From: Basidiobolus meristosporus CBS 931.73
Taxonomy: Eukaryota; Fungi; Basidiobolomycota
Assembly (NCBI GenBank): GCA_002104905.1
Contig: MCFE01000009.1
Span: 124,001-188,000, forward strand
Direction: 5' to 3'
DNA: 64,000 nucleotides
The position numbers were made by a program, and so were the translations under genes. The first letter of the stretch is position 1; each line of letters starts with the position of its first letter. Below the pieces are notes generated by a model. The model did not search any database. It was not told where the DNA came from and saw only the letters and a list, made by a program, of their open reading frames with translations. Positions 12,255 through 63,523 of the stretch are shown piece after piece.

Positions 12255-12560
12255 CTACTCTTTGTTTATTTGGCCATTGTTTATTGAGATGATCTTTGTA
12301 CAATTACCATATTTAGTCGAATTGCACCGAAACTTTATTTCTTGCGCCAATAAGGTTCTGCCTTTAAAGATCACCCTTGGGTTTTCTCTCTGCACCACAC
12401 CTGTTTGGAGTTTCACTTTAAACACATACCCACCAAGTCTTGCGTATTTGGATGAACTCTCACAATTGCAGAACACATTGAACCCATTCATCCAAAAGAT
12501 AATTACCGGGTAGTTCTCTAGAGTGAGCGGATTACCTTCTGGATGATTAGCTCCCACGCT
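12255..12560 (-). pseudogene. Degenerate type C small secreted protein with an internal deletion
   Basis: NPLTLENYPVIIFWMNGFNVFCN matches the core start. The sequence then jumps to DNA homologous to the 3' end and flank of member 3. Confidence 0.55.
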
Positions 12561-41714: not shown

Positions 41715-42581
41715 ATGTCTAAGATTTCTGCTGCCGCCAAGAACGCCGCCGGTAACATCCAGGAAGGAGTTGGAAAAGTGTTCAACAGTGAGAGCATGGT
41801 TGCCAAAGGTGAACAAAAGCAACTAGAGGCTGAACAGCAAAAGATTGCTGCCGACCAAAAGAACTCTGGCAATGCTCACTCTGCCAAGGGAGCAGCCAAA
41901 CAGAATGTTGGCGAGGCCACTCACAACCCACACATGGCTGCTCAAGGTCAAGCTGAGCGTCACCACGGGAATGTTCAGCACAATGCTGGAAGCGTGAATG
42001 ATCCCACTAACACCACTGGAGCTGGCTTGACTGGCACCCACCACCATGGAGCGACAACAACCAGCGGAGCCCATTCTCATGCAGTGAATAGCCACATTGC
42101 CGGAACTACCGATCCAGCGGGCCCTGGCTACACTGCTGGAGCTGGCCATCATGCCGCTCACCACAACCCTGCCACCACTGCAGCTGGCGTCCCAGCAACC
42201 GGAGTTGGGTCCACCCATGATCACGCCTACAACAATGGCACACATGGAAATGGGAATGCATCCACCATGTCTGGAAAGAAGGATCAAGCAATGGGAGCCA
42301 TGAAGGAGAATGTAGGAAGTGCCTTCAACAACCCATCCCTCGAGGCCAGAGGAGCAGGACAGCGCAATGAGGGTCACTTCCAGGAACATGCAGCCAAACA
42401 ACAACCGGGACGAGTTGCAGGATCAGCGAATGCAGCATCTGGAGCGGTCAAGGAGAATGTTGGGTACGCCGCTGGCAACCCATCCATGGAGCTGAATGGA
42501 GCATCCCAGCGAGTACATGGGGATGCGCAATATGACGCTACTCACAACCACAACAATCCTAACCCCAGCCGAGTTTTGTAG
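41715..42581 (+). CDS. CsbD/Hmp1-like (LEA-type) hydrophilin, copy 1, 288 aa
   Basis: Four units of G..KE.VG...N..(L/M).A.G..Q...G..Q, two either side of a His/Thr/Gly-rich linker. No Cys. Intronless. TATAAAA at about 41651. Confidence 0.8.
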   Translation: MSKISAAAKNAAGNIQEGVGKVFNSESMVAKGEQKQLEAEQQKIAADQKNSGNAHSAKGAAKQNVGEATHNPHMAAQGQAERHHGNVQHNAGSVNDPTNTTGAGLTGTHHHGATTTSGAHSHAVNSHIAGTTDPAGPGYTAGAGHHAAHHNPATTAAGVPATGVGSTHDHAYNNGTHGNGNASTMSGKKDQAMGAMKENVGSAFNNPSLEARGAGQRNEGHFQEHAAKQQPGRVAGSANAASGAVKENVGYAAGNPSMELNGASQRVHGDAQYDATHNHNNPNPSRVL

Positions 42582-42959
42582 TTGAATAATGTAAATGCAT
42601 ATATAGCTTGTTAAATAGTGAAATAAATATTACAATTTGATTTTGATACGTGTATTGCATTTTTGCGGCTATATATTATGGTATTGCTTGCCTGCTGAGA
42701 ACATGCACGTGTTTGGTGATTTGTTTATTTGCTGCAGTTATATATCTATATAGTAACTCACTACACTATTGAGAAGTAATATCGGTAGAGTTTGTAGTTG
42801 GTACACATCGATACAAAACAGTATAATAAATCAAAAGGATTGACGAAATAATGATAATAATGACAGCATCTAGCTTAATGCGGTAGGATTTAAGCAATGG
42901 ATGATGCTTAGCCAAATCCAAGCTTCTGTGTCAAGGAATGATCTTCAGCAAAAGATTTC

Positions 42960-43260
42960 TGCGGGCCAAATGGATTCTGAGCACAATAACGAGAGGGTAA
43001 ATGATCCCACCGGAACCACTACATTTGGCTTGACCTGCACCTACCACCATGAAACCATCATAGTCACCGTATCCAGCGAATAGTCACACTTTAATCACTG
43101 GCACTGACTGTCATACAGCTCATCACAACTCTATCGATGTAGTAGTTGGGGTTCCAGCAACCACGGTGAATCCTACAATATCGGTATATGTGGAAATACA
43201 CCTACTATGTTCGGAAAGAATGATCATGGAGAATGTGACAAGCCCCTGATGACAATCGGG
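42960..43260 (+). pseudogene. Decayed hydrophilin relic
   Basis: HNNERVNDPTGTTTFGLTCTYHH and later fragments (GVPAT; ACTATGTTCGGAAAGAATGATC) match the linker and the STMSGKKDQ segment of neighbouring copies. Confidence 0.6.
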
Positions 43261-43871
43261 GAATAAAATGGTATTGGTGCACGGTTGTTGCTGGCAATAA
43301 TGTCTTTTATACCCTGTTCAATTACCCTTCTTGCATGTTTAGTTGTGATAGGGGCAGAAGTTTAATGTTACCCGGATATCACACGGTAGATATAGACGAT
43401 TTATCACTGACTTTTGGAATTTCTTCAAGCACAAAAATAGTGTGGATAAAGTTGATACTATAAAAGTAAATAAAGTCAGTGTAAGTTGAAACCTTGTAAA
43501 ATGTTTGGATTAATGGCTAATTAATGCTGAATATTGCTATGTACGAAGAAAATCACGTACCCGATGATTGTCTGCAGGTGACGTGCCAACTACCAAGTCT
43601 TGGTAAATGATATATTTGGTGCTTGGCAATGTTGCTTCATAAAAAATTCCCCACATATATCATAGTGATGTAATGAAATTTCAGTTTGGTTTACAGCGAA
43701 ATTCTATTCATTCAAAGGAGTGACGCTAACGATAAATTAGATATACGACATGACCATATCTAAGACCCACGCTGATGGAATGGCACATAGCAATGCACAA
43801 TACGTATAAAAGAAACACAGAAGCCACCTAATTCTCAATTATAATCTATCCTACAAACAATCTAACCTGAT

Positions 43872-44936
43872 ATGTCGAAGATCTCTGCTGCCGCTAAGAA
43901 TGCCGCTGGTAACATCCAGGAAGGAATCGGAAAAGTGTTCAACAGTGAGAGCATGGTTGCCAAAGGTGAACAGAAGCAACTAGAGGCTGAACAGCAAAAG
44001 ATTGCTGCCGACCAAAAGAACTCTGGCAATGCTCACTCTGCCAAGGGAGCAGCCAAACAGAATGTTGGCGAGGCCACTCACAACCCACACATGGCTGCTC
44101 AAGGTCAAGCTGAGCGTCACCACGGGAATGTTCAGCACAATACTGGAAGTGTGAATGATCCCACTAACACCACTGGAGCTGGTTTGGCCGGCACCCACCA
44201 CCATGGAGCGACAACAACCAGCGGAGCCCATTCTCATCCAGTGAATAGCCACATTACTGGAACTACTGATCCAGCAGGTCCTGGTTACGGAACCAACACC
44301 ACCCATACACACAATTATAGTGGAAGTACTGGTGCTGACCATTATACAGTTCAACACAATCCCAATGCCACTACAGGTGGTGTTCCAGCAACTGGACTTG
44401 CTCCTACTGGTATCGCATCTACACAAAGCCATACGTACAACAACAACACAACAACCAATCCCGCAGGCTTGGGACATAGTGCTGGAACTACTGGTATTGA
44501 AAACTATACAGTTCAACATAATCCCAATGCCACCACAGCTGGGGTTCCAGCAGCTGGACTTGCTCCCACTGGTATTGCATCCACCCAAGGTAGAGCTTAT
44601 AGCAATGAAAAGCCATCCACTATTTCCGGCAAAAAGGATCAAGCGATGGGTGCTATGAAGGAGAATGTAGGAAGTGCCTTCAACAATCCATCTCTCGAGG
44701 CTAGAGGAGCAGGACAGCGCAATGAGGGCCACTTCCAGGAACACGCAGCCAAACAACAACCAGGACGAGTTGCAGGATCAGCGAATGCAGCGTCTGGAGC
44801 GGTCAAGGAGAATGTCGGGTACGCCGCTGGCAACCCATCCATGGAGCTGAATGGAGCATCCCAGCGAGTACATGGGGATGCCCAGTATGACGCTGCTCAC
44901 AACTACAGCAATCCCAATCCTAACCGAGTTCTGTAA
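43872..44936 (+). CDS. CsbD/Hmp1-like hydrophilin, copy 2, 354 aa (linker with internal duplication)
   Basis: Same terminal domains. YTVQHNPNATT.GVPA.GLAPTGIAST occurs twice in the linker. Confidence 0.8.
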   Translation: MSKISAAAKNAAGNIQEGIGKVFNSESMVAKGEQKQLEAEQQKIAADQKNSGNAHSAKGAAKQNVGEATHNPHMAAQGQAERHHGNVQHNTGSVNDPTNTTGAGLAGTHHHGATTTSGAHSHPVNSHITGTTDPAGPGYGTNTTHTHNYSGSTGADHYTVQHNPNATTGGVPATGLAPTGIASTQSHTYNNNTTTNPAGLGHSAGTTGIENYTVQHNPNATTAGVPAAGLAPTGIASTQGRAYSNEKPSTISGKKDQAMGAMKENVGSAFNNPSLEARGAGQRNEGHFQEHAAKQQPGRVAGSANAASGAVKENVGYAAGNPSMELNGASQRVHGDAQYDAAHNYSNPNPNRVL

Positions 44937-45823
44937 TTGAAATACATCAATCATGTAAATGCGAATATATCATGTTATATAGTGAAATAAATATTGCAAT
45001 TTGATTTTAGTGCATATGTTACAACCAAGTAAAATAAATCTCGAGTTCTATTGCTGACCACAATAACCACTATCCTGATCAAAAATCCTAGATCAGTTTT
45101 CGGTCTGAATAGTAAGTTTTCGCTGCCTGAAAGGTAGACGCAAAGAAAAGCTATACCTAATTTAGCTGAAGCTAAGTATGCGTTCTTACCACAACCATTT
45201 CTAACTTCATGTTGAACAGAGCTCCCCAATTTGACAGGTATACTTACTGCCCCGCTTAGTGCGGCTCAATATATTATGTAGTCTCGATTCATTGTTTTAA
45301 AGCCTTTCATATCATGTGCTAGATGGCTCTAGTATGCTGACGGAAGCTGATAGCAGTTATTAGCAACTTGACAGTAAGCACCAAGTTCTTGATCATGTGG
45401 GAGATTGTCATTTACTTGGATTATCATGTGGAAGATTGTCATTTATTTGGTATTTGGAAAGACTAGGGAACCCTTTGGCGTAAATGGTATTGCAGTAGAA
45501 ATTTAGTCCTAGAATCATACAACGCAAATGTCAGAAATTATCATTAAAATTTAGCTTAGAGTCCTTGTGCTCCATGTACCATACATTATTAATACCCAGG
45601 GTACTGGAACATCATGTAATGATGTATCTGATACCAAAAAAGGGAAATAAATCACGACCGACCATTCTAATCATTGTGATGAAATATATAGTCAAATGTG
45701 GATCGTTTGCATCATATTAAAAATTGAATTTTTGATTTGGCCACATGGTCGCGTTTATAAATATAAGCCCAAATCATACTACTTGACAAAACCAACTAAT
45801 ATCATCCACAAAACGTACTAAAT

Positions 45824-46909
45824 ATGTCGAAGATCTCTGCTGCCGCTAAGAATGCCGCTGGTAACATCCAGGAAGGAATCGGAAAAGTGTTCAACAGTGA
45901 GAGCATGGTTGCCAAAGGTGAACAGAAGCAACTAGAGGCTGAACAGCAAAAGATTGCTGCCGACCAAAAGAACTCTGGCAATGCTCACTCTGCCAAGGGA
46001 GCAGCCAAACAGAATGTTGGCGAGGCCACTCACAACCCACACATGGCTGCTCAAGGTCAAGCTGAGCGTCACCACGGGAATGTTCAGCACAATGCTGGAA
46101 GCGTGAATGATCCCACTAACACCACTGGAGCTGGCTTGACTGCCACTTACGAAAACGGTACCGCTACTTCCGTTGGCACTCATCACCCTAAAAATACTGC
46201 TGCAGTCGGTCCACACTCTCACTCAGTGAGTGGTGATATTACTACTGGAGCCACTGATCTTACTGGACCACATTATAATGCCAGTATTGCTCAACCACTT
46301 GGTAGTAATGTAGCTACCGGTGCTGGTCTTATCACATCTACCCACAACACTGGTGTAACTGCAACAGGAAACAACCATCATCATGGGGAGTACACAGCCA
46401 CCAGGCCCGCCCATTCACATTCAGTGAATAATGATATTTCGGGAGTTACTGATCCAACCGGCCCTAATCATCACTCTGCTCACCACAATACATCTACCGC
46501 TACAGTTGGGAGACCAGCAGCCGAGTTCGGCTCCACCCATGATCATACTTACAATAATGGTACAAATGGAAATGGGAATGCATCCACCATGTCTGGAAAG
46601 AAGGACCAAGCAATGGGAGCCATGAAGGAGAATGTAGGAAGCGCTCTCAACAACTCATCCCTCGAGGCCAGAGGAGCAGGACAGCGCAATGAGGGCCACT
46701 TCCAGGAACACGCAGCCAAACAACAACCAGGACGAGTTGCAGGATCAGCGAATGCAGCATCTGGAGCGGTCAAGGAGAATGTTGGGTACGCCGCTGGCAA
46801 CCCATCCATGGAGTTGAATGGTGCATCTCAGAGAGCATATGGTGATGAACAGTACAACGGCGCGACTCGTACCATCAACTATAACACTAATACCAACCAA
46901 GTATTGTAA
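45824..46909 (+). CDS. CsbD/Hmp1-like hydrophilin, copy 3, 361 aa
   Basis: Same terminal domains, long linker, and a distinctive tail YNGATRTINYNTNTNQVL. Confidence 0.8.
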   Translation: MSKISAAAKNAAGNIQEGIGKVFNSESMVAKGEQKQLEAEQQKIAADQKNSGNAHSAKGAAKQNVGEATHNPHMAAQGQAERHHGNVQHNAGSVNDPTNTTGAGLTATYENGTATSVGTHHPKNTAAVGPHSHSVSGDITTGATDLTGPHYNASIAQPLGSNVATGAGLITSTHNTGVTATGNNHHHGEYTATRPAHSHSVNNDISGVTDPTGPNHHSAHHNTSTATVGRPAAEFGSTHDHTYNNGTNGNGNASTMSGKKDQAMGAMKENVGSALNNSSLEARGAGQRNEGHFQEHAAKQQPGRVAGSANAASGAVKENVGYAAGNPSMELNGASQRAYGDEQYNGATRTINYNTNTNQVL

Positions 46910-47484
46910 ATCAAATAACCAGCCAATTACTTGCAGTGTAAAATAGTAAATAAATCAGATAAATTCGTAGTGCGTAAACATCACATTTATATTTTTTCAA
47001 CAGCCACAACTGAAAGATAGTTTTCTTTCAGCTTCTAACATTTTAGCGGGAAGTCCCAGATACTGATATTCAAGAGATATTACAAATTGGCTTTTTTAGT
47101 CGAGAATGTATATGTAGTGAGGTGCGAATTACCAAGAAGTATAGACTCATTGCTAACATTCGATAGTATAGTTTTGTCATGCAAAGTGTATGTGTTTGTA
47201 TATTCAATAATGTAATTTGCTGAAGTTCATAAATTTGTCAAATAGATTCGTATTATGCAGCAGGATGACGTAATACATTTGCTGACTTGTGGACCGGATA
47301 AATAAATAAGTGACGTTGTAGATTACTCCACTGTTTCTATAATAAATTACTTCATTTGTCTGGTGTAACCTCTCGAGGCCGTAATGATGGGAATACAATA
47401 TAGTATAAAAGTAAGAGCCAGTTCTGACTATTTGATAAATTAATCCAGGAAACCATCAGTTCCACTCATCTACTAATTTAAAAC

Positions 47485-48352
47485 ATGTCTAAGATTTCTG
47501 CTGCCGCCAAGAACGCCGCTGGTAACATCCAGGAAGGAGTTGGAAAAGTGTTCAACAGTGAGAGCATGGTTGCCAAAGGTGAACAGAAGCAACTAGAGGC
47601 TGAACAGCAAAAGATTGCTGCCGACCAAAAGAACTCTGGCAATGCTCACTCTGCCAAGGGAAGCAGCCAAACAGAATGTTGGCGAGGCCACTCACAACCC
47701 ACACATGGCTGCTCAAGGTCAAGCTGAGCGCCACCACGGGAATGTTCAGCACAATGCTGGAAGCGTGAATGATCCCACTGACACCACTGGAGCTGGTTTG
47801 GCCGGCACCCACCACCATGGAGCGACAACAACCAGCGGAGCCCATTCTCATCCAGTGAATAGCCACATTGCCGGAACTACCGATCCAACGGGCCCTGGCT
47901 ACAATACTGGAGCTGGCCATCATGCCGCTCACCACAACCCTGCCACCACTGCAGCTGGCGTCCCAGCAACCGGAGTTGGGTCCACCCATGATCACGCCTA
48001 CAACAATGGCACACATGGAAATGGGAATGCATCCACCATGTCTGGAAAGAAGGATCAAGCAATGGGAGCCATGAAGGAGAATGTAGGAAGTGCCTTCAAC
48101 AACCCATCCCTCGAGGCCAGAGGAGCAGGACAGCGCAATGAGGGCCACTTCCAGGAACACGCAGCCAAACAACAACCAGGACGAGTTGCAGGATCAGCGA
48201 ATGCGGCATCTGGAGCGGTCAAGGGGAATGTCGGGTACGCCGCTGGCAACCCATCCATGGAGCTGAATGGAGCATCCCAGCGAGTACATGGGGATGCCCA
48301 GTATGACGTTGCTCACAACTACAGCAACCCTAACCCCAACCGAGTTTTGTAA
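47485..48352 (+). pseudogene. CsbD/Hmp1-like hydrophilin, copy 4, with a +1 frameshift at about 47661 (or a sequencing error)
   Basis: GCCAAGGGAAGCAGCC here against GCCAAGGGAGCAGCC in copies 1-3 and 6. Otherwise intact and nearly identical to copy 1. Confidence 0.75.
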
Positions 48353-49104: not shown

Positions 49105-49512
49105 ATGAACTACTTCCTGATCCTTGCGCTTGCCTGTACCGCTGTGCTTCACCTCGACGGTGTCCAGTCCCACTCATCAAAGCACACCTCAAAGCACCAT
49201 TCCAAGCACTGGTCTAAGCATCACACCAAGCACTGGCCCAAGCACCACTCCAAGCACAAGCATCACTCCAAGCATCACTCCAAGCACAAGCCCCACTACA
49301 ACCCATTCACCCCAAAGAACTACCCTGGCATCATCTTCAAGCAGGGAAGCAAGAATGCCTTTTGCTACAATGGCAAGACCAACTTCATTGTCAAGAGATC
49401 GTCCGACTGCCCAGCCGATGCTGGATGCTACAATGTGTACAATGACAAGAGAACGCTCAAGGACCTGTTGGCCAAGCTACAGAAAGACCCCAGCCTAGCC
49501 AAATGCACATAG
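49105..49512 (+). CDS. Small secreted protein, type D with His/Lys-rich N-terminal repeats, 135 aa
   Basis: Signal peptide, (S/T/P)KH(H/T/W) repeats, then YNPFTPKNYPGIIF...FCYNG...CPADAGCY...DPSLAKC. Confidence 0.85.
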   Translation: MNYFLILALACTAVLHLDGVQSHSSKHTSKHHSKHWSKHHTKHWPKHHSKHKHHSKHHSKHKPHYNPFTPKNYPGIIFKQGSKNAFCYNGKTNFIVKRSSDCPADAGCYNVYNDKRTLKDLLAKLQKDPSLAKCT

Positions 49513-50682: not shown

Positions 50683-51543
50683 ATGTCAAAGATCTCTGCT
50701 GCCGCTAAGAATGCCGCTGGTAACATCCAGGAAGGAATCGGAAAAGTGTTCAACAGTGAGAGTATGGTTGCCAAAGGTGAGCAGAAGCAGCTGGAGGCCG
50801 AACAGCAAAAGGTCGCAGCTGATCAAAAGAACTACGGTAATGCTCACTCAGCCAAAGGAGCGGCCAAACAGAATGTTGGCGAGGCCACTCACAACCCACA
50901 CATGGCTGCTCAAGGCCAAGCTGAGCGTCACCACGGGAATGTCGAACACAACGCTGGAAGAGTGAACGATCCCACTGACACCACTGGAACTGGATTGGCT
51001 GGTACTCACCACCATAGTGCTGCCACCTCCACCGGAGTCCATTCACATCCAGTGAACAGTGATATTTCTGGAACCACGTATACTTCTGGTCCTGGCCACA
51101 CCGCTGCCACTGGCCATCATACTGCTCACCACAATCGAGCTACTACGGCAGTTGGGGGACCAGCAACCGGAGTTGGATCCACCCATGGTCATGCTTACAA
51201 CAATGGTACAAATGGGAATGGGAATGCATCCACCATGTCTGGAAAGAAAGATCAAGCAATGGGAGCCATGAAGGAGAATGTAGGAAGCGCTCTCAACAAC
51301 CCATCCCTCGAGGCCAGAGGAGCAGGACAGCGCAATGAGGGCCACTTCCAGGAACATGCAGCCAAACAACAACCGGGACGAGTTGCAGGATCAGCGAATG
51401 CAGCATATGGAGCGATCAAGGAGAATGTTGGGTACGCCACTGGCAACCCATCCATGGAGCTGAATGGTGCATCTCAACGAGTACATGGGGATGCCCAGTA
51501 CAATGCTTCTCACCACTACAACAACCCTAATCGAGTACTCTAA
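50683..51543 (+). CDS. CsbD/Hmp1-like hydrophilin, copy 5, 286 aa
   Basis: Intact ORF and near-identical inverted partner of 57615-58475. Confidence 0.8.
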   Translation: MSKISAAAKNAAGNIQEGIGKVFNSESMVAKGEQKQLEAEQQKVAADQKNYGNAHSAKGAAKQNVGEATHNPHMAAQGQAERHHGNVEHNAGRVNDPTDTTGTGLAGTHHHSAATSTGVHSHPVNSDISGTTYTSGPGHTAATGHHTAHHNRATTAVGGPATGVGSTHGHAYNNGTNGNGNASTMSGKKDQAMGAMKENVGSALNNPSLEARGAGQRNEGHFQEHAAKQQPGRVAGSANAAYGAIKENVGYATGNPSMELNGASQRVHGDAQYNASHHYNNPNRVL

Positions 51544-51924
51544 TTGAAAGATAGCAATAATGTAAATGCAAATATACCATGTCAAATAGTAAAATAAATA
51601 TCGTAGTTTTATTTGTTTTAAAGAGTACCTCTTGCCGTTATGAAGAAGTACAAAGAATGAGGATGAGAAGACGAAGAAAGTGAAGTATATAACACATATC
51701 TTTCAGGATAATCGATCATGCAGACATACGTGTATACTACTTCCGGTATTAGGAATATGCAGTTTAATGGATTCGAATGATTTTCAACTTAGAGTCAAAC
51801 TGGTGATCTTGGATACCTACAGACTACCCATGTCAAGAAATATTGTTTCTATTACCCAGCGCCTCGTTCAACAAGAAACACGGAAGTTAGATCGGCCTCC
51901 TAACTCTTCTCTTAGTCCAATAAA

Positions 51925-52109
51925 CATCATCTTTAAGCAGGGAAGCAAGAATGCCTTTTGCTACAATGGCAAGACCAACTTCATTGTCAAAGAGATCATC
52001 CGACTGCCCAACTGATGCTGGATGCTACAATGTGCACAATGACAAGAGAACGCTCAAGGACATGTTGGCCAAGCTACAGAAAGACCCCAGCCTAGCCAAA
52101 TGCACATAG
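51925..52109 (+). pseudogene. 5'-truncated, frameshifted type D secreted-protein relic
   Basis: Matches the 3' half of 49105-49512 from IIFKQGSK to AKCT*, with an extra A (GTCAAAGAGA). The signal peptide and His repeats are absent. Confidence 0.8.
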
Positions 52110-53158
52110 ATCTCAGCGTGAGACTGCTATTCGCAGAAGGCCCTGTAGATGCTGTAGTCGGATCTAATAGAGTAACAGAATTTGTAAAATTTGACAAATT
52201 GGAACAGTAAGAGTTGCATACTTGTGGATGTTCTCAAATCAATAAATAGCACAATTTTGGCATACTTGTGTCATTTTTATGAATGAGAAAGAATTGCTAG
52301 TACACACATACCAAGCAATTAATACAGTCACTCAAGCGCTAGTCAACTTTTAATGGGTTTACCTTGCTTGCTTCATGAGTACTCGATAAGGTATGTTTGA
52401 ATTATAGATCTCGAAATGAATTCAACAATATGCCAAGAACCTAGATTTCTCTATGATAAACAATGCTTTTGTGATTAATTAACTCAATGCTCTTCTCCAT
52501 TTCACCTGTGGTTCATGTTCTCATCGAGTTGATATCATTCTTTATATGTATATACTTTTGAAAGTTTAGAAGTTCACTCCGCATTTTTCTTATGCAATCA
52601 TAGCTCCTGTTGGCTGCCACTGGATATTTTAATTTTATATATCAGCACTCACTATGAGGAGTAGGAGTATATATGTTGGTATGTTAAATTCCATATGTTC
52701 TTGATTGAAAGGTAATTCCTAGCCTCGATTTACCAAACATGTTAAAAATGATAGAACCAATACTAGGTTTTGGCCAAGAAGTAGCGTAAGAACATCTATT
52801 ATTTACTGATAGATAATTAAATGATAGATTAACATCATTGATTTTTACCCACACACCCTCTATATGTGCAGTACTCGAAGAAGTATACTCTGATATATTC
52901 ATGGAGCTATGGTAAGTCGACGTCACAAGTAAGGGTGCTGATGAAATGGAATTGATCACGTTTGAAAATCTTCACAAATGGAGAGGATGACGTAAATAGT
53001 TTAACTAAATATTTAATATATTTAGTATTCCTTTCAGATCTACTAACCAGGAACAATGCACCCAATGCTATATCTTTGAAATGTATTTAAATAGAGGGAA
53101 CTTTCATGCCAACCGATAAAAAATACTAAACATCTATAACTTTCACAAACAAATCATA

Positions 53159-53842
53159 ATGTCAAAGATCACTGCTGCCGCCAAAAACGCCGCCGGTAAC
53201 ATCCAGGAAGGAGTTGGAAAAGTGTTCAACAGTGAGAGCATGGTTGCCAAAGGTGAACAGAAGCAACTAGAGGCTGAACAGCAAAAGATTGCTGCCGACC
53301 AAAAGAACTCTGGCAATGCTCACTCTGCCAAGGGAGCAGCCAAACAGAATGTTGGCGAGGCCACTCACAACCCACACATGGCTGCTCAAGGTCAAGCTGA
53401 GCGCCACCACGGGAATGTTCAGCACAATACTGGAAGTGTGAATGATCCCACTAACACCGCTGGAGCTGGTTTGACTGGCACTCACCACCATGGAGTGACA
53501 ACAACTCGCGGAGCCCATTCCCATCCCGTGAACAGCCACATTGCCGGAACTACCGATCCAACGGGCCCTGGCTACACTGCCGGAACTGGTCATCATGCGG
53601 CTCACCACAACCCTGCCACCACTACAGCTGGCGTCCCAGCAACCGGAGTTGGGTCCACCCATGATCACGCCTACAACAATGGCACAAATGGAAATGGGAA
53701 TGCATCCACCATGTCTGAAAAGAAGGATCAAGTAATGGGAGCCATGAAAAAGAATATAGGAAGTGCTTTGGATAATCCATCTCTTCAAGCTAAGGGAGAG
53801 GCGCAACGGGCTGCAGGCCATCTTCAGGAGCATACCGCTTAA
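53159..53842 (+). CDS. CsbD/Hmp1-like hydrophilin, copy 6, truncated (227 aa; last unit lost)
   Basis: Early TAA after QEHTA. Downstream DNA (GAACAACCAGGGAAAGTAACAGAATCAGCGAA) is a decayed version of the missing C-terminal unit. Confidence 0.7.
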   Translation: MSKITAAAKNAAGNIQEGVGKVFNSESMVAKGEQKQLEAEQQKIAADQKNSGNAHSAKGAAKQNVGEATHNPHMAAQGQAERHHGNVQHNTGSVNDPTNTAGAGLTGTHHHGVTTTRGAHSHPVNSHIAGTTDPTGPGYTAGTGHHAAHHNPATTTAGVPATGVGSTHDHAYNNGTNGNGNASTMSEKKDQVMGAMKKNIGSALDNPSLQAKGEAQRAAGHLQEHTA

Positions 53843-54628: not shown

Positions 54629-55036
54629 ATGAACTACTTCCTGATCCTTGCGCTTGCCTGTACCGCTGTGCTTCACCTCGACGGTGTCCAGTCCCACTCA
54701 TCAAAGCACACCTCAAAGCACCATTCCAAGCACTGGTCTAAGCATCACACCAAGCACTGGCCCAAGCACCACTCCAAGCACAAGCATCACTCCAAGCATC
54801 ACTCCAAGCACAAGCCCCACTACAACCCATTCACCCCAAAGAACTACCCTGGCATCATCTTCAAGCAGGGAAGCAAGAATGCCTTTTGCTACAATGGCAA
54901 GACCAACTTCATTGTCAAGAGATCGTCCGACTGCCCAGCCGATGCTGGATGCTACAATGTGTACAATGACAAGAGAACGCTCAAGGACCTGTTGGCCAAG
55001 CTACAGAAAGACCCCAGCCTAGCCAAATGCACATAG
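54629..55036 (+). CDS. Type D His-rich small secreted protein, same protein as 49105-49512
   Basis: Identical translation, and about 270 bp of upstream DNA is also near-identical. Confidence 0.85.
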   Translation: MNYFLILALACTAVLHLDGVQSHSSKHTSKHHSKHWSKHHTKHWPKHHSKHKHHSKHHSKHKPHYNPFTPKNYPGIIFKQGSKNAFCYNGKTNFIVKRSSDCPADAGCYNVYNDKRTLKDLLAKLQKDPSLAKCT

Positions 55037-56398
55037 ATCCCAATGTAAAATTGACATTTGGACAAGCACTTGTAGTTGCTGCAACTGGCCACAATAGAGT
55101 TACAGAATTCAATCCAGGCTTAGGAAAAATACAAGTTACATAAATACTTCCAGTAATAAATTGTTTGATTTTGGCATACTTACATAGGAGTTGAGCATTG
55201 CTCTCATTTACCATATTTCTCCTTCTATTCAGCACGAGTGCTTTATCTTCAAATATCTGCAACCATCCTTCTTTAAAAAGGGAATCTCAATATGAAATTA
55301 ATGCTAGAGACTCAGTGAAATATCTTAATAACATGAAATGTTGTGGTATAATAATTAAAATTCATGTAATAGTTCACCTGTTTCACTAACAGGTCAACCA
55401 GAAAAAGCAATAATAGTTTCTCGATCAGTGGCGAGCGGTATGGTGGCCAGTGGTAAAGTATCTTCAACTATTTCATCCGAAACCCTGTTTGCGACGTAGG
55501 CATTACGTGGTATTGTCCGATATGATAAATTGTGTTTGACCAAGTATGAATATTACAAAGCGGTTTGGTTCATGTAACTAAAATTCTGGATTAACGACAA
55601 TAATCAATGTATGTTCAGGAGATTATGAATAAATTCGTATCTTCATGGCAACTGAATGTTAGTTGTCCGGAAAAACCTCTTGATCTCAATTGTTTGTAAT
55701 ACCCAACAAGTATGTCAGAGACAATTGCATTGGTAAGTTTGGACATTTTATCGTCGATCAAACTAGGCTTCAGTTACCAAACTAAGTACCTACTGTCACT
55801 GAATTTTCTCAACACAGCCTCACAATATGCAAAATAATGTAGCTCACCGATCCTTCAACTTAAAATTCTGGCTCTGGTATACATGTGTTGGCAAGATATT
55901 TATTCTTGTCGATATGTCAGCTTGGCTATCTTTGTTTTCTTAAATTTCAAGTCAGACTCATTTTACATTGTTATAAAGAACAGTTGGCATATCACCGTGG
56001 GGACTGGCACACAAACAATACTGGATACGGTTATCCATATGATCTCTATGCGTTGTATCTTGAGATTGCCCCAAAATGTAGAAAATGATATCATAATCCC
56101 ATGCTGTGAGCTGACGCTCGCACAAGTACAGTGTGCGTCAGATTGACTGGTTGTTATGAGATATTAACTATTCTATAGCTTGTTTAGCTTGTTTAAGCGC
56201 TCTTCGATGTTCTTTGAATTTGAATTGTAGGATTTGCATGCAAATATGCCAAAATTGTGACATTTATTGATCCGAGAATGCCCACAGGTGTGCAACTCGT
56301 ACTCTTTCATAACCTCTAGCATTACGTATTCTACTGTTCTATTGGATCCTTCTCAGCCACTACAAAGCCTTATCCAAGTATCAGTCTCACACTGAGAT

Positions 56399-56806
56399 CT
56401 ATGTGCATTTGGCTAGGCTGGGGTCTTTCTGTAGCTTGGCCAACAGGTCCTTGAGCGTTCTCTTGTCATTGTACACATTGTAGCATCCAGCATCGGCTGG
56501 GCAGTCGGACGATCTCTTGACAATGAAGTTGGTCTTGCCATTGTAGCAAAAGGCATTCTTGCTTCCCTGCTTGAAGATGATGCCAGGGTAGTTCTTTGGG
56601 GTGAATGGATTGTAGTGGGGCTTGTGCTTGGAGTGATGCTTGGAGTGATGCTTGTGCTTGGAGTGGTGCTTGGGCCAGTGCTTGGTGTGATGCTTAGACC
56701 AGTGCTTGGAATGGTGCTTTGAGGTGTGCTTTGATGAGTGGGACTGGACACCGTCGAGGTGAAGCACAGCGGTACAGGCAAGCGCAAGGATCAGGAAGTA
56801 GTTCAT
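56399..56806 (-). CDS. Type D His-rich small secreted protein (inverted), same protein as 49105-49512
   Basis: Identical translation, with one visible synonymous difference (AAC/AAT in YNPF). Confidence 0.85.
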   Translation of the reverse strand: MNYFLILALACTAVLHLDGVQSHSSKHTSKHHSKHWSKHHTKHWPKHHSKHKHHSKHHSKHKPHYNPFTPKNYPGIIFKQGSKNAFCYNGKTNFIVKRSSDCPADAGCYNVYNDKRTLKDLLAKLQKDPSLAKCT

Positions 56807-57614: not shown

Positions 57615-58475
57615 TTAGAGTACTCGATTAGGGTTGTTGTAGTGGTGAGAAGCATTGTACTGGGCATCCCCATGTACTCGTTGAGATGCACCATTCAGCT
57701 CCATGGATGGGTTGCCAGTGGCGTACCCAACATTCTCCTTGATCGCTCCAGATGCTGCATCCGCTGATCCTGCAACTCGTCCCGGTTGTTGTTTGGCTGC
57801 ATGTTCCTGGAAGTGGCCCTCATTGCGCTGTCCTGCTCCTCTGGCCTCGAGGGATGGGTTGTTGAAGGCACTTCCTACATTCTCCTTCATGGCTCCCATT
57901 GCTTGATCCTTCTTTCCAGACATGGTGGATGCATTTCCATTCCCATTTGTACCATTGTTGTAAGCATGACCATGGGTGGATCCAACTCCGGTTGCTGGTC
58001 CCCCAACTGCCGTAGTAGCTGGATTGTGGTGAGCAGTATGATGGCCAGCGGCAGCAGTGTGGCCAGGACCAGAAGTATACGTGGTTCCAGAGATATCACT
58101 GTTCACTGGATGTGAATGGACTCCGGTGGAGGTGGCAGCACTATGGTGGTGAGTACCAGTCAAGCCAGCTCCAGTGGTGTCAGTGGGATCGTTCACTCTT
58201 CCAGCGTTGTGTTCGACATTCCCGTGGTGACGCTCAGCTTGGCCTTGAGCAGCCATGTGTGGGTTGTGAGTGGCCTCGCCAACATTCTGTTTGGCCGCTC
58301 CTTTGGCTGAGTGAGCATTACCGTAGTTCTTTTGATCAGCTGCGACCTTTTGCTGTTCGGCCTCCAGCTGCTTCTGCTCACCTTTGGCAACCATACTCTC
58401 ACTGTTGAACACTTTTCCGATTCCTTCCTGGATGTTACCAGCGGCATTCTTAGCGGCAGCAGAGATCTTTGACAT
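57615..58475 (-). CDS. CsbD/Hmp1-like hydrophilin, copy 7, 286 aa
   Basis: Intact ORF with few substitutions relative to 50683-51543. Confidence 0.8.
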   Translation of the reverse strand: MSKISAAAKNAAGNIQEGIGKVFNSESMVAKGEQKQLEAEQQKVAADQKNYGNAHSAKGAAKQNVGEATHNPHMAAQGQAERHHGNVEHNAGRVNDPTDTTGAGLTGTHHHSAATSTGVHSHPVNSDISGTTYTSGPGHTAAAGHHTAHHNPATTAVGGPATGVGSTHGHAYNNGTNGNGNASTMSGKKDQAMGAMKENVGSAFNNPSLEARGAGQRNEGHFQEHAAKQQPGRVAGSADAASGAIKENVGYATGNPSMELNGASQRVHGDAQYNASHHYNNPNRVL

Positions 58476-59386
58476 GGTGATTTGTTTGGCTGATGGTAGT
58501 GGTTGTATTTCGGTTTTCTGATTGTTGTAAACAACGCCATGATGCTTATATACTTTTCCACATTACTACTGTTTGCATCGGAAATCACCAAACTAGATTT
58601 GGTCAACGGTCAGACAATATCACAACAAGCTTCCAACGTCACACCTTCCATTTGAGGGAATTTTATTAATCTGGCTCAATTTCAACGTCATCAGCACCCT
58701 TACTTTTGTGACGTAGATATTACTTGTATTCACTAAATTCAATGAACAATTTGGATGGTTAACTTTACTTCTCAATTTAATGACGTCGGCAGAACAAGGT
58801 CAAATAATGGCATTCAGCTTGTCAGTCTATATTCAGCATAGCGGCTTGGGTCAGTGCTCCACCAACCCTGCCACTTTAAAATCGATTCTACGGCAGCTTT
58901 GACAAATATGCAGATGTTCAAAGTGACCAAATTGCAATTACCGGTCTAAAGTTCGCACGCTATTTGGAATTATAGTCATCAGATGAGTATTCAATTTCAC
59001 TATCTAGTTTGCGGTATTTCATTGACAAACCAAGTTGCAGCTGCCAAGCTTAATAACGTGCTATCGCTGAATGCCTTCAACATCTCCCTACACCAACGCA
59101 GCCAAACTATATTCCACTCAAAAATAATTAAGATATTTGTTTTCCCTCGGCCGAAACAACTAATACCTTCATAGCTTCCCTACGAAAAAAATTAGTATTT
59201 TCATCCCCATATCGAACTGATACTTCTATAACCACCTATGCGATAGTACCATTTATTACTAAAAAATTTCTTACTATAAGCGCCTTGTGCTTATCAAAAA
59301 CCTCAAGCACACTGAATTCTGGAACTCTATCAGATCTAGTAGCAATCTCTACGAGAACTTCTAATATCAGCTCGCGCAGGAATCTA

Positions 59387-60037
59387 TTAGCATTTGGCTA
59401 GGCTGGGGTTCCTCTGTAACTTAGCTAGCAGATGCTTGAGATCTTTCCTGTCCCTGCTCACGACGTAACATCCAACATCTGCTACACATTCGGATGATCT
59501 CTCGACAATGAAGTTGATCATGCGATTGTAGCAAAAAGCATATTTTCCATCTCGTTCGAAGATGATGCCAGGGTAGTTCTTGGGGGTGAACGGGTCGTAG
59601 TACCTTTCATGCTTGGGCCAGTGCTTTGTGTGGTGTTTTGGCCAGTGCTTTGTGTGGTGTTTGGGCCAGTGCTTACTGTTATTGTTATTGTTGTTCCAGT
59701 TCTTGTTGTTGTTATTGTTGTTGTTCCAGTTCTTGTTGCTGTTGTTGTTCCAGCTCTTGTTGTTGTTATTGTTGCTCCAGTTCTTGTTGTTGTTATTGTT
59801 GCTCCAGTTCTTGTTGTTGTTATTGTTGTTCCAGTTCTTGTTGTTGTTATTGTTGTTCCAGTTCTTGTTGTTGTTGTTGTTGTTGTTGTTGTTCCAGTTC
59901 TTGTTCTCATACTTGTAGTGATATTCCGAATAGTGATTTGAGTTTTGCCTTGATGTTTGCTTTGATGAATGAGATTGTACACCATCTAGGTGGATTACAG
60001 CAGTACAGGCAAGTACAAGAGCCAGGAGATAGTTCAT
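59387..60037 (-). CDS. Small secreted protein with Asn-rich (KNWNNNNN)n and KHWPKHHT repeats, 216 aa
   Basis: Signal peptide like type D, the repeat block, then YDPFTPKNYPGIIF...FCYN...CVADVGCY...NPSLAKC. Confidence 0.85.
   Translation of the reverse strand: MNYLLALVLACTAVIHLDGVQSHSSKQTSRQNSNHYSEYHYKYENKNWNNNNNNNNNKNWNNNNNNKNWNNNNNNKNWSNNNNNKNWSNNNNNKSWNNNSNKNWNNNNNNNKNWNNNNNNSKHWPKHHTKHWPKHHTKHWPKHERYYDPFTPKNYPGIIFERDGKYAFCYNRMINFIVERSSECVADVGCYVVSRDRKDLKHLLAKLQRNPSLAKC
59605..59905. repeat. Coding mini/microsatellite: (TTG)n-based units encoding (K[N/S]W[N/S]NNNNN)-type repeats plus 24-bp units encoding KHWPKHHT
   Basis: Directly visible tandem units such as GTTCCAGTTCTTGTTGTTGTTATTGTT and TTGGGCCAGTGCTTTGTGTGGTGT. 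Confidence 0.9.
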
Positions 60038-60763
60038 ATTGAAGAATGCGTGGACTATAGTTGTTGAATTCGGCTCCTTTTATGCGGTAGAGGATGGGAG
60101 ACTAGGGCGAAATAAGGCATTCTGGTGCAAGAAATTATGAGACGTGGCGCAGAGCTTTTTCAGTGAGTCACTTGGCCTATTTCTTCTCAAACACTACTAT
60201 TTTTGCAAAGCTTCATTTAATTGGGTCATGGATAGCATCAAGAGTACGGATGACCTTTTATAGCTGTGCTTGAAACAGAACAATCTGAGACAGAGGGCCT
60301 CCGAGCATTAGAGACCAGCTGCCTGACTTGTAGCTCAACTTTATTGTATAATTGGCGCATTCTTTACTATATTTTTGAATATATTCCAGGATATTTTGTT
60401 GACATTATGCACATCTACATACATGCGATTAAGCTCTTTGTATAGGTGTACTGAATGAAGCATAGTTCGATAGTCAAGTTATTGAGATACCAACATGTAT
60501 GTATAATCAATGTTGAAATCCACTTTATCTCATTGATGTTGATGAGTAGCTATGAACCAAGCCAACAGGTCATAAGTCAAAGCTAAACAATAGTGAGCTA
60601 AATTTGACTATACTATCACAACAGCCCATTGATAGCTATTGATAGCAAGCAAAAGCACATAACTGCCCCTTGTAATCGTACATCAAGCAGAAATTGAGGT
60701 ATTTATTGTACAAGATAACATGATTTCAATACTCTTGAATTTTACATTACAATTATAACTCAA

Positions 60764-61627
60764 TTACAGTACTCGGTTCGGGTTGTTGTAGTTATTATGA
60801 GCGATATCATACTGGTCATCACCATGTGCGCGCTGCAATGCTCCATTCAGTTCCATGGATGGGTTGCCAGTGGCGTACCCAACATTCTCCTTGACCGCTC
60901 CAGATGCTGCATTCGCTGATCCTGCAACTCGTCCCGGTTGTTGTTTGGCTGCGTGTTCCTGGAAGTGGCCCTCATTGCGCTGTCCTGCTCCTCTGGCCTC
61001 GAGGGATGGGTTGTTGAGAACGCTTCCTACATTCTCCTTCATGGCTCCCATTGCTTGGTCCTTCTTTCCAGACATGGTGGATGCATTTCCATTCCCATTT
61101 GTACCATTGTTGTAAGCAAGACCATGGGTGGATCCAACTCCGGTTGCTGGTCCCCCAACTGCCGTAGTAGCTGGATTGTGGTGAGCAGTATGATGGCCAG
61201 CGGCAGCGGTGTGGCCAGGACCAGAAGTATACGTGGTTCCAGAAATATCACTGTTCACTGGATGTGAATGGACTCCGGTGGAGGTGGCAGCACTATGGTG
61301 GTGAGTACCAGTCAAGCCAGTTCCAGTGGTGTCAGTGGGATCGTTCACTCTTCCAGCGTTGTGTTCGACATTCCCGTGGTGACGCTCAGCTTGGCCTTGA
61401 GCAGCCATGTGTGGGTTGTGAGTGGCCTCGCCAACATTCTGTTTGGCCGCTCCTTTGGCTGAGTGAGCATTACCGTAGTTCTTTTGATCAGCTGCGACCT
61501 TTTGCTGTTCGGCCTCCAGCTGCTTCTGCTCACCTTTGGCAACCATACTCTCACTGTTGAACACTTTTCCGATTCCTTCCTGGATGTTACCGGCAACGTT
61601 TTTAGCAGTAGCAGAAATCTTCGACAT
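60764..61627 (-). CDS. CsbD/Hmp1-like hydrophilin, copy 8, 287 aa
   Basis: Intact ORF with the same architecture. Confidence 0.8.
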   Translation of the reverse strand: MSKISATAKNVAGNIQEGIGKVFNSESMVAKGEQKQLEAEQQKVAADQKNYGNAHSAKGAAKQNVGEATHNPHMAAQGQAERHHGNVEHNAGRVNDPTDTTGTGLTGTHHHSAATSTGVHSHPVNSDISGTTYTSGPGHTAAAGHHTAHHNPATTAVGGPATGVGSTHGLAYNNGTNGNGNASTMSGKKDQAMGAMKENVGSVLNNPSLEARGAGQRNEGHFQEHAAKQQPGRVAGSANAASGAVKENVGYATGNPSMELNGALQRAHGDDQYDIAHNNYNNPNRVL

Positions 61628-62440
61628 TATTAAGTTATTTGGGGATGGTAAGGGTAGATTGTTTTCTTGTCAGGTCGTGTATTGCCCCGGTTTCTTTTAT
61701 AGTTCTTTTCTTCTACCTTCCCCATCAATAGTATAGTTGTATATCAATAATGAAGTTAATTTGGTGTATGCATTCATTGATTGCGATAACAGAAATAAAT
61801 TTCGAGTCATGGTTGAACCACTTTTATTACATCACTGTTATGCAGGTGAGATTAATTTTGGTAAAATCGACATCAGTGGTGGTATTACCATTTACAAATT
61901 CAACTTGGAATCCCTTATCAAACCTTAATTTTATAAAATGCAGAATGCCTGGTACTGCTATTTGGAGTTCGGTATTCCATCATTGTTTTTGAAATTAGCC
62001 TTAATTGTCAATTATTGTGTAAAAACTAGGTTGTGACGTGAGCCTAAAAGGAGTGATGGGATGTGCTTATTTAGAACGGATATCAAGACTGGTGTTACAA
62101 TAGACTTGCAAAGATGGAAACAGTCGCTGACTATACTTCACCAGTATAGTGGAAATATCTTCGGTGCCATATTAGAGCCTCGTTTAAATCCTTTTTTCAA
62201 TCAAGTACAACATCGTTGATAACTATATTGAATTCTTTTAAAATTTCAAATACTGATAATTTTGTGTCATTTTTAGCAATAAATTGATTTATGACTAATG
62301 CTAATACAATGTACCATATATCAAACAACAATACGAAGCAATTTTCTTATTGGATTGTTCTGATTGCCATGCGACGAGAATAGTCTTTTTAATGCTAAAG
62401 CTTTTTTGCTTACAAATTAATTAAAGAGATACAGGATATA

Positions 62441-63523
62441 TTACAATACTTTGTTGGTATTAGTGTTATAGTTGATGGTACGAGTCGCGCCGTTGTACTG
62501 TTCATCACCATATGCTCTCTGAGATGCACCATTCAACTCCATGGATGGGTTGCCAGCGGCGTACCCAACATTCTCCTTGACCGCTCCAGATGCCGCATTC
62601 GCTGATCCTGCAACTCGTCCTGGTTGTTGTTTGGCTGCGTGTTCCTGGAAGTGGCCCTCATTGCGCTGTCCTGCTCCTCTGGCCTCGAGGGATGGGTTGT
62701 TGAGAGCGCTTCCTACATTCTCCTTCATGGCTCCCATTGCTTGATCCTTCTTTCCAGACATGGTGGATGCATTCCCATTCCCATTTGTACCATTGTTGTA
62801 AGCATGATCATGAATGGAATTGAGCCCGTCTGCTGGTCCTCCGGTTGTAGCGGTAGGTGTATTATGGTGAGTAGTGTAATGAACAGGACCACTAGTATAC
62901 CCAGAGCCAGTTGCAGAAGTATCTCCAGCAATGTGACTATTCACAGGGTGTGAATGTGTGGGCCCGGTGGCTGTGTAAATGCCATGATGATGGTAGCCAG
63001 CTGCTGGAGCTCCTACTCCAGTTGCATCAGATCTACCGGTAGACGTGTCAAGGCTAGCTCCGGTAGCTACATTACTACCAACTGGTTGAACAATACCGGC
63101 ATTGTAATGTGGCCCAGTAAGATCAGTGGCTCCAGTAGTAAGATCACCACTCACTGAGTGAGGGTGTGTACCGACTGCTGTAGTATTTCCCGGGCGATGA
63201 GTGCCAGCCAACCCAGCTCCAGTGGTGTCAGTGGGATCATTTACTCTTCCAGCGTTGTGTTCGACATTCCCGTGGTGACGCTCAGCTTGGCCTTGAGCAG
63301 CCATGTGTGGGTTGTGAGTGGCCTCGCCAACATTCTGTTTGGCCGCTCCTTTGGCTGAGTGAGCATTACCGTAGTTCTTTTGATCAGCTGCGACCTTTTG
63401 CTGTTCGGCCTCCAGCTGCTTCTGCTCACCTTTGGCAACCATACTCTCACTGTTGAACACTTTTCCGATTCCTTCCTGGATGTTACCGGCAACGTTTTTA
63501 GCAGTAGCAGAAATCTTTGACAT
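62441..63523 (-). CDS. CsbD/Hmp1-like hydrophilin, copy 9, 360 aa
   Basis: The long linker and tail YNGATRTINYNTNTNKVL are shared specifically with copy 3 (45824-46909). Confidence 0.8.
   Translation of the reverse strand: MSKISATAKNVAGNIQEGIGKVFNSESMVAKGEQKQLEAEQQKVAADQKNYGNAHSAKGAAKQNVGEATHNPHMAAQGQAERHHGNVEHNAGRVNDPTDTTGAGLAGTHRPGNTTAVGTHPHSVSGDLTTGATDLTGPHYNAGIVQPVGSNVATGASLDTSTGRSDATGVGAPAAGYHHHGIYTATGPTHSHPVNSHIAGDTSATGSGYTSGPVHYTTHHNTPTATTGGPADGLNSIHDHAYNNGTNGNGNASTMSGKKDQAMGAMKENVGSALNNPSLEARGAGQRNEGHFQEHAAKQQPGRVAGSANAASGAVKENVGYAAGNPSMELNGASQRAYGDEQYNGATRTINYNTNTNKVL

Follow-up and report, generated by a model that had tools for sequence, protein, structure and literature searches.

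Interleaved CsbD-domain and secreted-protein genes in a convergent cluster of Basidiobolus meristosporus: candidate gene conversion within and between inverted arms

Introduction

Basidiobolus meristosporus is a fungus of the frog and lizard gut. One contig of its genome (MCFE01000009.1, assembly GCA_002104905.1) carries, within approximately 22 kb, 14 genes of two families: nine encode CsbD-domain proteins (H1–H9) and five belong to a family of putatively secreted proteins (S1–S5, of which S2 is a pseudogene). They lie at 41.7–63.5 kb of the 64,000-nucleotide stretch that was analyzed (contig positions 124,001 to 188,000; hereafter the window, to which all coordinates refer). Compared over 21 kb, the window and this contig agree with 0 mismatches. 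The genes form two arms that face each other, which raises the question of how two unrelated families came to be interleaved in this order. A first-pass annotation proposed that an old inverted duplication had amplified a linked, co-regulated module of both families, for example for a spore or desiccation programme.

Results

Arrangement of the Cluster

The strand split described in the first-pass annotation is present: the H and S genes at 41715–55036 are all on the plus strand, and those at 56399–63523 are all on the minus strand. The spacer of about 1.2 kb where the arms converge was likewise confirmed, with 1,272 bp between the homologous S3 and S4 blocks and 1,362 bp between S3 and S4 when measured from stop to stop.

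55082..56353, no strand: spacer at the point of convergence, flanked by the inverted S3 and S4 blocks (self-comparison)

From H3 inward and from H9 inward, the genes follow one type order, H-H-S-H-S, and they are similarly spaced, at approximately 1.6 kb, on the two arms. H1, H2, H6, and the S2 pseudogene fragment are extra on the plus arm, without a mirror counterpart. The count of runs in the H/S gene order is within random expectation (P = 0.27). A scan of 40–64 kb for Rfam families and tRNAs found none.

The H Genes Encode CsbD-Domain Proteins

The H genes are as follows:

41715..42581, plus strand: H1, 288 aa, four CsbD stretches with a linker rich in His, Thr, and Gly (ORF; Pfam CsbD 121.6 bits)
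43872..44936, plus strand: H2, 354 aa, with an extra linker insertion unique to H2 (ORF, alignment)
45824..46909, plus strand: H3, 361 aa, long-linker type, mosaic (segment trees)
47485..48352, plus strand: H4, otherwise intact, frame broken by a 1-bp insertion near nt 177 (two ORFs; extra A in alignment)
50683..51543, plus strand: H5, 286 aa, of a clade otherwise confined to the minus arm (self-comparison)
53159..53842, plus strand: H6, 227 aa, three CsbD stretches, departing from the other copies past approximately nt 610 (ORF, Pfam, alignment)
57615..58475, minus strand: H7, 286 aa, partner of H5 (self-comparison, Pfam)
60764..61627, minus strand: H8, 287 aa (segment comparison)
62441..63523, minus strand: H9, 360 aa, long-linker type, outermost gene of the cluster, partner of H3 in linker and 3′ end (alignment, segment trees)

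The H proteins match the Pfam CsbD family (PF05532) at 96–122 bits, well above the cut-off of 40, with three or four stretches each. A linker of 89–170 residues, rich in His, Thr, and Gly, divides four CsbD stretches two plus two. This four-repeat plus linker architecture is unique to the H genes and unites them, and a word search found it in Basidiobolus only. Four stretches around such a linker, and nine linked copies, set the H proteins apart from other CsbD-like proteins, including MaCsbD of Metarhizium acridum. Loss of the latter reduces tolerance to heat and UV-B and slows conidial germination (PMC12733939), a phenotype that fits a putative stress-protectant role of the H proteins.

As had been proposed for an intracellular, Cys-free family, the H proteins lack Cys and an N-terminal signal-like segment. 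The name hydrophilin that they had been given holds in part. Hydrophilins are defined by Gly above 6% and a hydrophilicity index above 1.0 (PMC3306391). The H proteins contain 12.5–14.2% Gly, but GRAVY is -0.78 to -0.89 in all eight intact proteins, so that their index (0.78–0.89) falls short of the strict definition. They resemble hydrophilins and LEA-type proteins in high Gly, absence of Cys and Trp, strong hydrophilicity, and a low-complexity linker, and differ from them also in that the CsbD parts form a defined domain and not a wholly disordered chain. With dN/dS of 0.04–0.2 in the CsbD parts and 0.16–0.19 in the linker, the H coding sequence, linker included, is under purifying selection.

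Of the H proteins, only H3 has an exact counterpart in the public protein collection; exact searches for H7 and H9 gave no match in public protein records. For H4, the public annotation places an intron over the frame break, resulting in a 259-aa product. H6 matches the single relative from B. ranarum (228 aa) in length and architecture.

The S Genes Encode Small, Putatively Secreted Cysteine Proteins

The S genes, and a further array of the same family elsewhere in the window, are as follows:

49105..49512, plus strand: S1, 135 aa, signal-like N-terminus, His/Lys-rich tandem-repeat module, and 70-aa four-Cys core (ORF, alignment)
51893..52268, plus strand: S2 pseudogene fragment, frameshifted core without signal peptide or repeat module (tblastn, three-frame translation)
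54629..55036, plus strand: S3, encodes the same protein as S1 and S4 (alignment)
56399..56806, minus strand: S4, encodes the same protein as S1 and S3 (alignment)
59387..60037, minus strand: S5, 216 aa, signal segment and core as in S1, tandem-repeat module with an Asn/Trp-rich 27-nt unit, together with 2.6 copies of a 24-nt His/Lys unit (ORF, repeat analysis)
9748..26192, minus strand: array apart from the cluster, with ≥10 genes of the S1–S5 family; it lacks low-complexity modules and contains no H genes (tblastn with S1 and S5 cores, 43–57% identity, E 1e-12 to 1e-26; ORFs)

The S proteins open with a hydrophobic signal-like segment and their core carries four Cys, in agreement with the secreted type assigned to them from sequence. 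The 70-residue core and signal-like N-terminus define the family, whose members in the window are linked by tblastn at E 1e-12 to 1e-50. Among 17 invariant columns of the core alignment, three are Cys, and these are common to the cluster genes and the array at 9.7–26.2 kb. The cluster copies differ from the array by the tandem-repeat low-complexity module between signal segment and core, and they form a clade of their own (support 94), which points to expansion in place. Within it, the core tree places S5 as sister to S1/S3/S4 (support 94). The S1 coding sequence is identical to that of S3 and has one synonymous change relative to S4 (0–1 differences in 408 coding nt); the S2 fragment matches the 3′ half of S1 at 85.8% identity.

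A profile of the S core, compared with 1.84 billion representatives, matched Basidiobolus proteins only. The S proteins had no match in Pfam, and a word search found no relatives of S1. UniRef carries automatic names for two S relatives (Ecp2 effector domain; RlpA-like barrel), which we rejected, as Pfam gives neither at E up to 10. The fold of the core is predicted with confidence (pLDDT 92). The predicted fold had no convincing match in the PDB (Foldseek), among 48,000 chains (VIA-align, best Z 3.2), or in the ESM Atlas (TM ≤0.51). For longer S-type relatives the AlphaFold model is unusable (pLDDT 49), and a feature-based query of the Atlas, made with a long-form relative, was uninformative (best score 0.76).

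Pairing of Genes Between the Arms

The first-pass annotation had paired H3 with H9, H4 with H8, S1 with S5, and H5 with H7. H5 and H7 are indeed a pair, 98.2% identical in inverted orientation over 1,186 bp, including 267 bp upstream. A long linker insertion and a distinctive C-terminal tail are common to H3 and H9 alone, as had been noted, and trees of the linker and of the 3′ end (98.9% identical) place the two genes together with support 100; in the 5′ third the pairing breaks down. There, the tree of the first 330 nt separates {H1, H2, H3, H4, H6} from {H5, H7, H8, H9} with support 100, and sisterhood of H3 and H9 is rejected (AU p = 7e-10). Gene trees thus agree with the arms for H5/H7 and for two thirds of H3/H9, but not for the other two pairs: H4 is closest to H1 (98%) and H8 to H5/H7/H9, and the S1 and S5 cores are only approximately 68% identical, whereas the S1, S3, and S4 proteins are the same. 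Divergence between the arms is also uneven, from 98% identity for H5/H7 to 82% for the linker of H3/H9.

A self-BLAST recovered no multi-gene inverted segment; likeness is limited to the genes and at most 350 bp of flank, so that the arms are gene-sized islands of similarity and not a palindrome continuous through intergenic DNA. The mirrored spacers are no more similar than shuffled sequences, the best of 32 comparisons (z 3.7) adjoining an S promoter.

Mosaic Genes and Sharp Edges of Homology

Segments of the H genes have significantly different trees (AU test), a mosaic pattern expected under concerted evolution. Along the gene, dS between H3 and H9 falls from 0.60 through 0.27 to 0.03. In H8, the linker is 98% identical to H5/H7 and the 5′ end 98% identical to H9, and the 3′ end forms a separate branch. 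Over 317 nt at the 5′ end, beginning 2 bp upstream of the ATG, H2 is 99% identical to H3.

The edges of homology are sharp and lie at or close to the coding sequences. Similarity of 96–98% between H1 and H4, and between H1 and H6, starts at the ATG, and the homology of H1 to H4, its closest copy (98%), runs from the ATG to the stop. S1 and S3 are identical from about -270 to about +440 relative to the ATG, and S1 and S4 from about -120 to about +600, from which we conclude that the tracts end at different points. Beside these near-identical coding sequences, the S1/S3/S4 flanks become unalignable. Retroposition was considered and rejected, as poly(A) tails are absent and the homology edges lie at the ATG instead of at transcript ends.

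Promoters and Linkage of the Two Families

The H and S promoters have no k-mer in common besides the TATA box, and a search for STRE, heat-shock elements, and common promoter words found none above shuffled controls except this box. At the other loci compared (three other S-type arrays and the B. ranarum H-like gene), H and S genes were not found as neighbors. The genes flanking the B. ranarum gene, the one distant relative, on an 11-kb contig, have no counterpart within or beside the window. No sign of a functional link between the H and S families was found.

Discussion

The two families are unrelated and interleaved, as first described: the H proteins are CsbD proteins, the S proteins have no Pfam match, and both have expanded in place. 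We consider it probable, from the sequence patterns described here, that the locus is an old lineage-specific cluster in which two families expanded and interleaved, and in which gene conversion homogenized coding sequences within and between the arms. Conflicting segment trees, similarity that ends sharply at coding sequences, and dissimilar spacers lead us to this reading, and it is from such patterns in one genome that we infer conversion as the process. H-S units may have duplicated in tandem, with one inversion or inverted duplication in addition, although the order of these events is conjectural. Every gene would be a separate transcription unit with its own TATA-type promoter, and the flanking DNA would have diverged past recognition. 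Coding likeness would be upheld by strong purifying selection and by recurrent conversion, both inside an arm and across the inverted arms, such conversion giving rise to apparent pairs. The H proteins would act as abundant cytoplasmic stress protectants at high dosage and the S proteins would be exported.

That a single old inverted duplication of an H-H-S-H-S segment produced the mirror arms, with the two families linked and co-regulated as a module for spores or desiccation, appears unlikely to us. The equal inward order from H3 and H9 in convergent arms and the like spacing are what such an event would leave, and the linker and tail unique to H3/H9, the inverted, 98% identical H5/H7, and the in-place expansion of both families would suit it as well. 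Since H and S types alternate, a register shift by two genes (S3|S4, H6|H7, S2|S5, H5|H8) fits equally, and the run count is ordinary against random. The mirrored spacers show no homology, H4/H8 and S1/S5 are not closest relatives, and the remaining pairs are of very unequal divergence, with H3/H9 mosaic. As an explanation of the gene order, the duplication put forward by the first-pass annotation is thus not supported, although gene conversion could have wiped out an original mirror pairing. The module itself is weakened by the absence from H and S promoters of a common k-mer beyond the TATA box and of STRE, and by the three other S-type arrays and the B. ranarum H-like gene, which lack the other family nearby.

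Conversion might be dispensed with altogether if single-gene blocks, each a gene with a short promoter, had been duplicated serially and recently and inserted side by side in either orientation. The blocks are gene-sized (0.6–1.2 kb, flank ≤350 bp), and H5/H7 and S1/S3/S4 could be explained by very recent events of this type. We nevertheless regard this as quite improbable for the locus as a whole: many copies are 96–99% identical from the ATG yet have no upstream DNA in common, individual genes are mosaics of several relatives, S1 has a 5′ flank in common with S3 and a 3′ flank in common with S4, and we saw neither target-site duplications nor poly(A) tails nor transposon ends. A false inverted arrangement assembled from chimeric or collapsed repeats is hardly credible. 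The region is repeat-rich, and the single-base insertion in H4 is of a type that long-read assemblies can introduce; however, the assembly was built with PacBio reads (PMC7466969), the inverted blocks measure just 0.6–1.2 kb, and all copies sit in unique flanks and differ by many substitutions and in linker length, so that reads of a few kb would anchor every gene.

In-place expansion with conversion, our preferred reading, would make this locus of an early-diverging fungus a small, clean case of concerted evolution, with conversion apparently confined to coding sequence and acting across inverted orientation in two unrelated, adjoining families. Primate Y-chromosome palindromes are an example of arm-to-arm conversion in inverted repeats. 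The cluster resembles these, and other concertedly evolving families, in its near-identical inverted coding copies, diverged flanks, mosaic genes, and variable tract ends; it differs from the palindromes in that its arms are not continuous and consist of gene-sized islands only, and in that two unrelated families are interleaved. The locus alone reveals neither a new mechanism nor a proven functional module. It adds a new CsbD architecture, with two plus two repeats about a selected His-rich linker, and indicates that a genus-specific secreted family can acquire interchangeable low-complexity modules.

A more speculative proposal, to which we give very little weight, is that selection keeps the families interleaved because they cooperate. 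His-rich cytoplasmic CsbD proteins and His/Lys-rich exported proteins would then serve one co-regulated programme, for example to buffer metals within the cell and outside it, or to protect dispersal spores and coat their surface, and the inverted arms would keep the copies identical by arm-to-arm conversion.

Outward of H9, the cluster is bordered by AMMECR1 and tyrosinase genes; the exons of AMMECR1 encode at most 58 residues each.

Organization of the cluster

Between 40 and 64 kb of the window, the ORF list holds nine paralogous intronless genes (H1–H9), which code for stress-protein-type products with the CsbD domain (Pfam PF05532), and four intact genes (S1 and S3–S5) of a family of small secreted cysteine-containing proteins.

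Genes of the cluster (window positions, strand, feature, basis)
41715–42581, plus, H1, ORF
43872–44936, plus, H2, ORF
45824–46909, plus, H3, ORF
47485–48352, plus, H4, ORF list
49105–49512, plus, S1, ORF
50683–51543, plus, H5, ORF
~51.9–52.3 kb, plus, S2, frameshifted fragment of the S family
53159–53842, plus, H6, ORF
54629–55036, plus, S3, ORF
56399–56806, minus, S4, ORF
57615–58475, minus, H7, ORF
59387–60037, minus, S5, ORF
60764–61627, minus, H8, ORF
62441–63523, minus, H9, ORF

The gene order is H1-H2-H3-H4-S1-H5-S2-H6-S3 and, beyond the central spacer, S4-H7-S5-H8-H9. As claimed in the first-pass annotation, all cluster genes up to 55036 are on the plus strand and all from 56399 onward on the minus strand; the arms converge on a gap between S3 and S4, whose stop codons are 1,362 bp apart and whose similar blocks are 1,272 bp apart. 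Ordinary genes border the cluster: to its left a DUF3512-like gene and one of 176 residues, and to its right, just past the window end, AMMECR1 and tyrosinase genes (L003:169–2660). H9 and the AMMECR1 gene are oriented divergently, with approximately 600 bp between them. A public locus of 21 kb, retrieved with H3, agrees with the window at every base (0 mismatches) and so locates the window at MCFE01000009.1:124001–188000 of assembly GCA_002104905.1. As the genome of B. meristosporus CBS 931.73 is PacBio-sequenced (PMC7466969), every copy is surrounded by unique flanking DNA, and many substitutions separate the copies, a misassembly of the cluster is unlikely.

Relationships between the two arms

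The two arms had been proposed to be mirror images derived from a single old inverted duplication, with H3/H9, H4/H8, S1/S5 and H5/H7 as pairs. Self-BLAST revealed no long inverted multi-gene segment, as similarity occurs only in gene-sized islands with at most ~350 bp of flank. Local alignments of the mirrored spacers scored like shuffled sequence; the highest z among 32 comparisons was 3.7, adjoining the shared S promoter.

Pairing was tested with segment-wise identity matrices and trees of the 5′ 330 nt, the linker and the 3′ 290 nt of the H genes. The 5′ segment separates H1, H2, H3, H4 and H6 from H5, H7, H8 and H9 (support 100, ~89% identity between clades). The linkers fall into the groups H1/H4/H6, H5/H7/H8 and H3/H9 (82% identical), and that of H2 stands apart. 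Over the 3′ segment, H3 and H9 reach 98.9% identity (support 100). The relationship between H3 and H9 is therefore real for the linker and the 3′ end, but these genes are mosaic: constraining H3 with H9 was rejected for the 5′ segment (AU p = 7e-10), and their synonymous divergence runs 0.60, 0.27 and 0.03 along the gene. H5/H7 is a genuine and young pair, 98.2% identical over 1,186 bp, of which 267 bp lie upstream of the genes. The other two pairs dissolve, as H4 is 98% identical to H1 while H8 groups with H5/H7 and H9, and the proteins of S1, S3 and S4 are identical, with 0–1 coding differences, leaving S1/S5 without specificity. H and S genes alternate in the central part, so that moving the register by two genes (S3/S4, H6/H7, S2/S5, H5/H8) matches the gene types just as well. 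Runs in the gene order are unremarkable compared to random order (P = 0.27), and their count is very unlike that of two separate blocks. The original observation of an interleaved, convergent cluster is thus largely right; strict mirror pairing and a single old inverted duplication are unsupported as stated, though such a duplication may have occurred.

Probable gene conversion and a proposed history

Similarity has sharp boundaries, which centre on the coding sequence. H1/H4 and H1/H6 pass from unalignable to 96–98% identical at the ATG, H2/H3 show 99% identity from 2 bp before the ATG, and similarity between H5 and H8 starts ~44 bp upstream. S1 and S3 are identical from approximately -270 to +440, and S1 and S4 from approximately -120 to +600; with these different tract ends, S1 has its 5′ flank in common with S3 and its 3′ flank in common with S4 of the other arm. 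Within the H clades synonymous divergence is low (0.02–0.14), beside flanks without similarity. This combination does not match ordinary duplication; it agrees with conversion among old paralogues that by then had divergent flanks.

The most likely history would start from a founder H and a founder S gene side by side. Tandem duplication of such H+S units would have produced the alternation, and the convergent arms would stem from a single inversion or inverted duplication; H-only duplications would have extended both outer ends. Intergenic DNA would afterwards have diverged to saturation, with selection and conversion keeping the coding sequences alike. Exchange of tracts between the arms by conversion is probably ongoing, most recently among S1/S3/S4 and between H5 and H7, and the inverted orientation would permit it without deletion of intervening genes. 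As a lineage-specific multigene cluster that probably evolves in concert, the locus illustrates a known type well; it has a new CsbD architecture and a genus-restricted secreted family.

The CsbD-domain proteins

All tested H proteins matched Pfam CsbD far above the cut-off. Most contain four CsbD stretches, two on each side of a Thr/Gly/Ala/His-rich linker (13.5% His in H7); H6 ends early and has only three. The proteins lack Cys and Trp, with 12.5–14.2% Gly and a GRAVY of -0.78 to -0.89. The earlier label "hydrophilin" agrees with the glycine criterion of the definition, but the hydrophilicity index of > 1.0 that it also includes (PMC3306391) is not reached; "CsbD-domain hydrophilic protein" is more accurate.

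The H genes are under strong selection, with dN/dS of 0.04–0.2 in the CsbD parts. The linker is constrained too, as dN/dS between the two main linker types is 0.16–0.19; only the long H3/H9 linker is relaxed (0.77). In a word-based search of 5.8 billion proteins, a similar layout was found only in H3 itself and in one Basidiobolus ranarum protein of 228 residues (L002:1537–2223). The length and architecture of this single relative are like those of H6, so the version with three stretches may have come first.

In H2 the longer linker (44200–44700) has an apparent internal duplication of ~45 residues, absent from all other copies and not reported by Tandem Repeats Finder at default score. In H4 one extra A near nt 177 disrupts the frame, which an intron masks in the public annotation; H4 is either a very young pseudogene or carries a long-read indel error. 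A CsbD knockout of Metarhizium acridum tolerates heat and UV-B less well, and its conidia are slower to germinate (PMC12733939); our literature search found no paper naming Basidiobolus together with CsbD.

The secreted family and its link to the H genes

The S proteins consist of a hydrophobic, signal-like N-terminal segment, a module built of tandem repeats, and a C-terminal core of 70 residues with four Cys. In S1/S3/S4 the module is made of 12- and 24-nt DNA units, and the stretch they encode is 40% His and 26% Lys. The module of S5 has a 27-nt unit (59677–59893, 7.7 copies, 89% match) whose encoded stretch is 46% Asn with Trp at regular intervals; 2.6 copies of the 24-nt His/Lys unit come next. 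Given these adjoining remnants, one type of repeat seems to have taken over from the other, by replacing it or by outgrowing it.

No Pfam match was found for the S proteins. At least 10 genes of a minus-strand array at 9.7–26.2 kb encode clear homologues of the core (43–57% identity, E down to 1e-26). When 1.84 billion representatives were searched with a profile built from nine cores, all true relatives came from B. meristosporus and B. ranarum. The fold of the core is predicted with high confidence (pLDDT 92), and structural comparison gave no convincing neighbour. In a tree of the cores, S5 and S1/S3/S4 are united in a single clade (support 94), separate from the neighbouring array and from longer relatives, indicating that the cluster S genes descend from a single founder that multiplied in place.

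The co-regulated functional module proposed earlier gained no support from the H and S promoters or the other loci compared. Each gene has its own TATA-type box ~45–75 bp before the ATG; beyond this, the H and S upstream regions have no word in common when compared with shuffles, and contain no STRE elements. No CsbD gene lies close to the S-type arrays at three further loci, one of them in B. meristosporus and two in B. ranarum, and S genes are absent from the 11-kb contig that carries the H-like gene of B. ranarum; the two families thus each amplify alone in Basidiobolus, and their mixing is specific to the 41.7–63.5 kb locus. The neighbours of the B. ranarum gene lack counterparts both within the window and next to it. 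Functional coupling would be a conjecture, its sole and weak hint being the His-richness common to H linker and S module.

Across the secreted family (9748–26192, 49300–49509, 59390–59596) three Cys are invariant. The fourth divides the family into two subfamilies, being found at core position 31 in the first and 43 in the second; S1, S5 and the genes at 11.5 and 14.7 kb belong to the second. This pattern points to the relocation of a disulfide partner. A longer form, in which the core carries a conserved C-terminal extension ending in Cys, occurs in further small arrays of four copies apiece (L007:1–12000 and L006:1–5997) in B. meristosporus and B. ranarum; public gene calls miss some of these copies.
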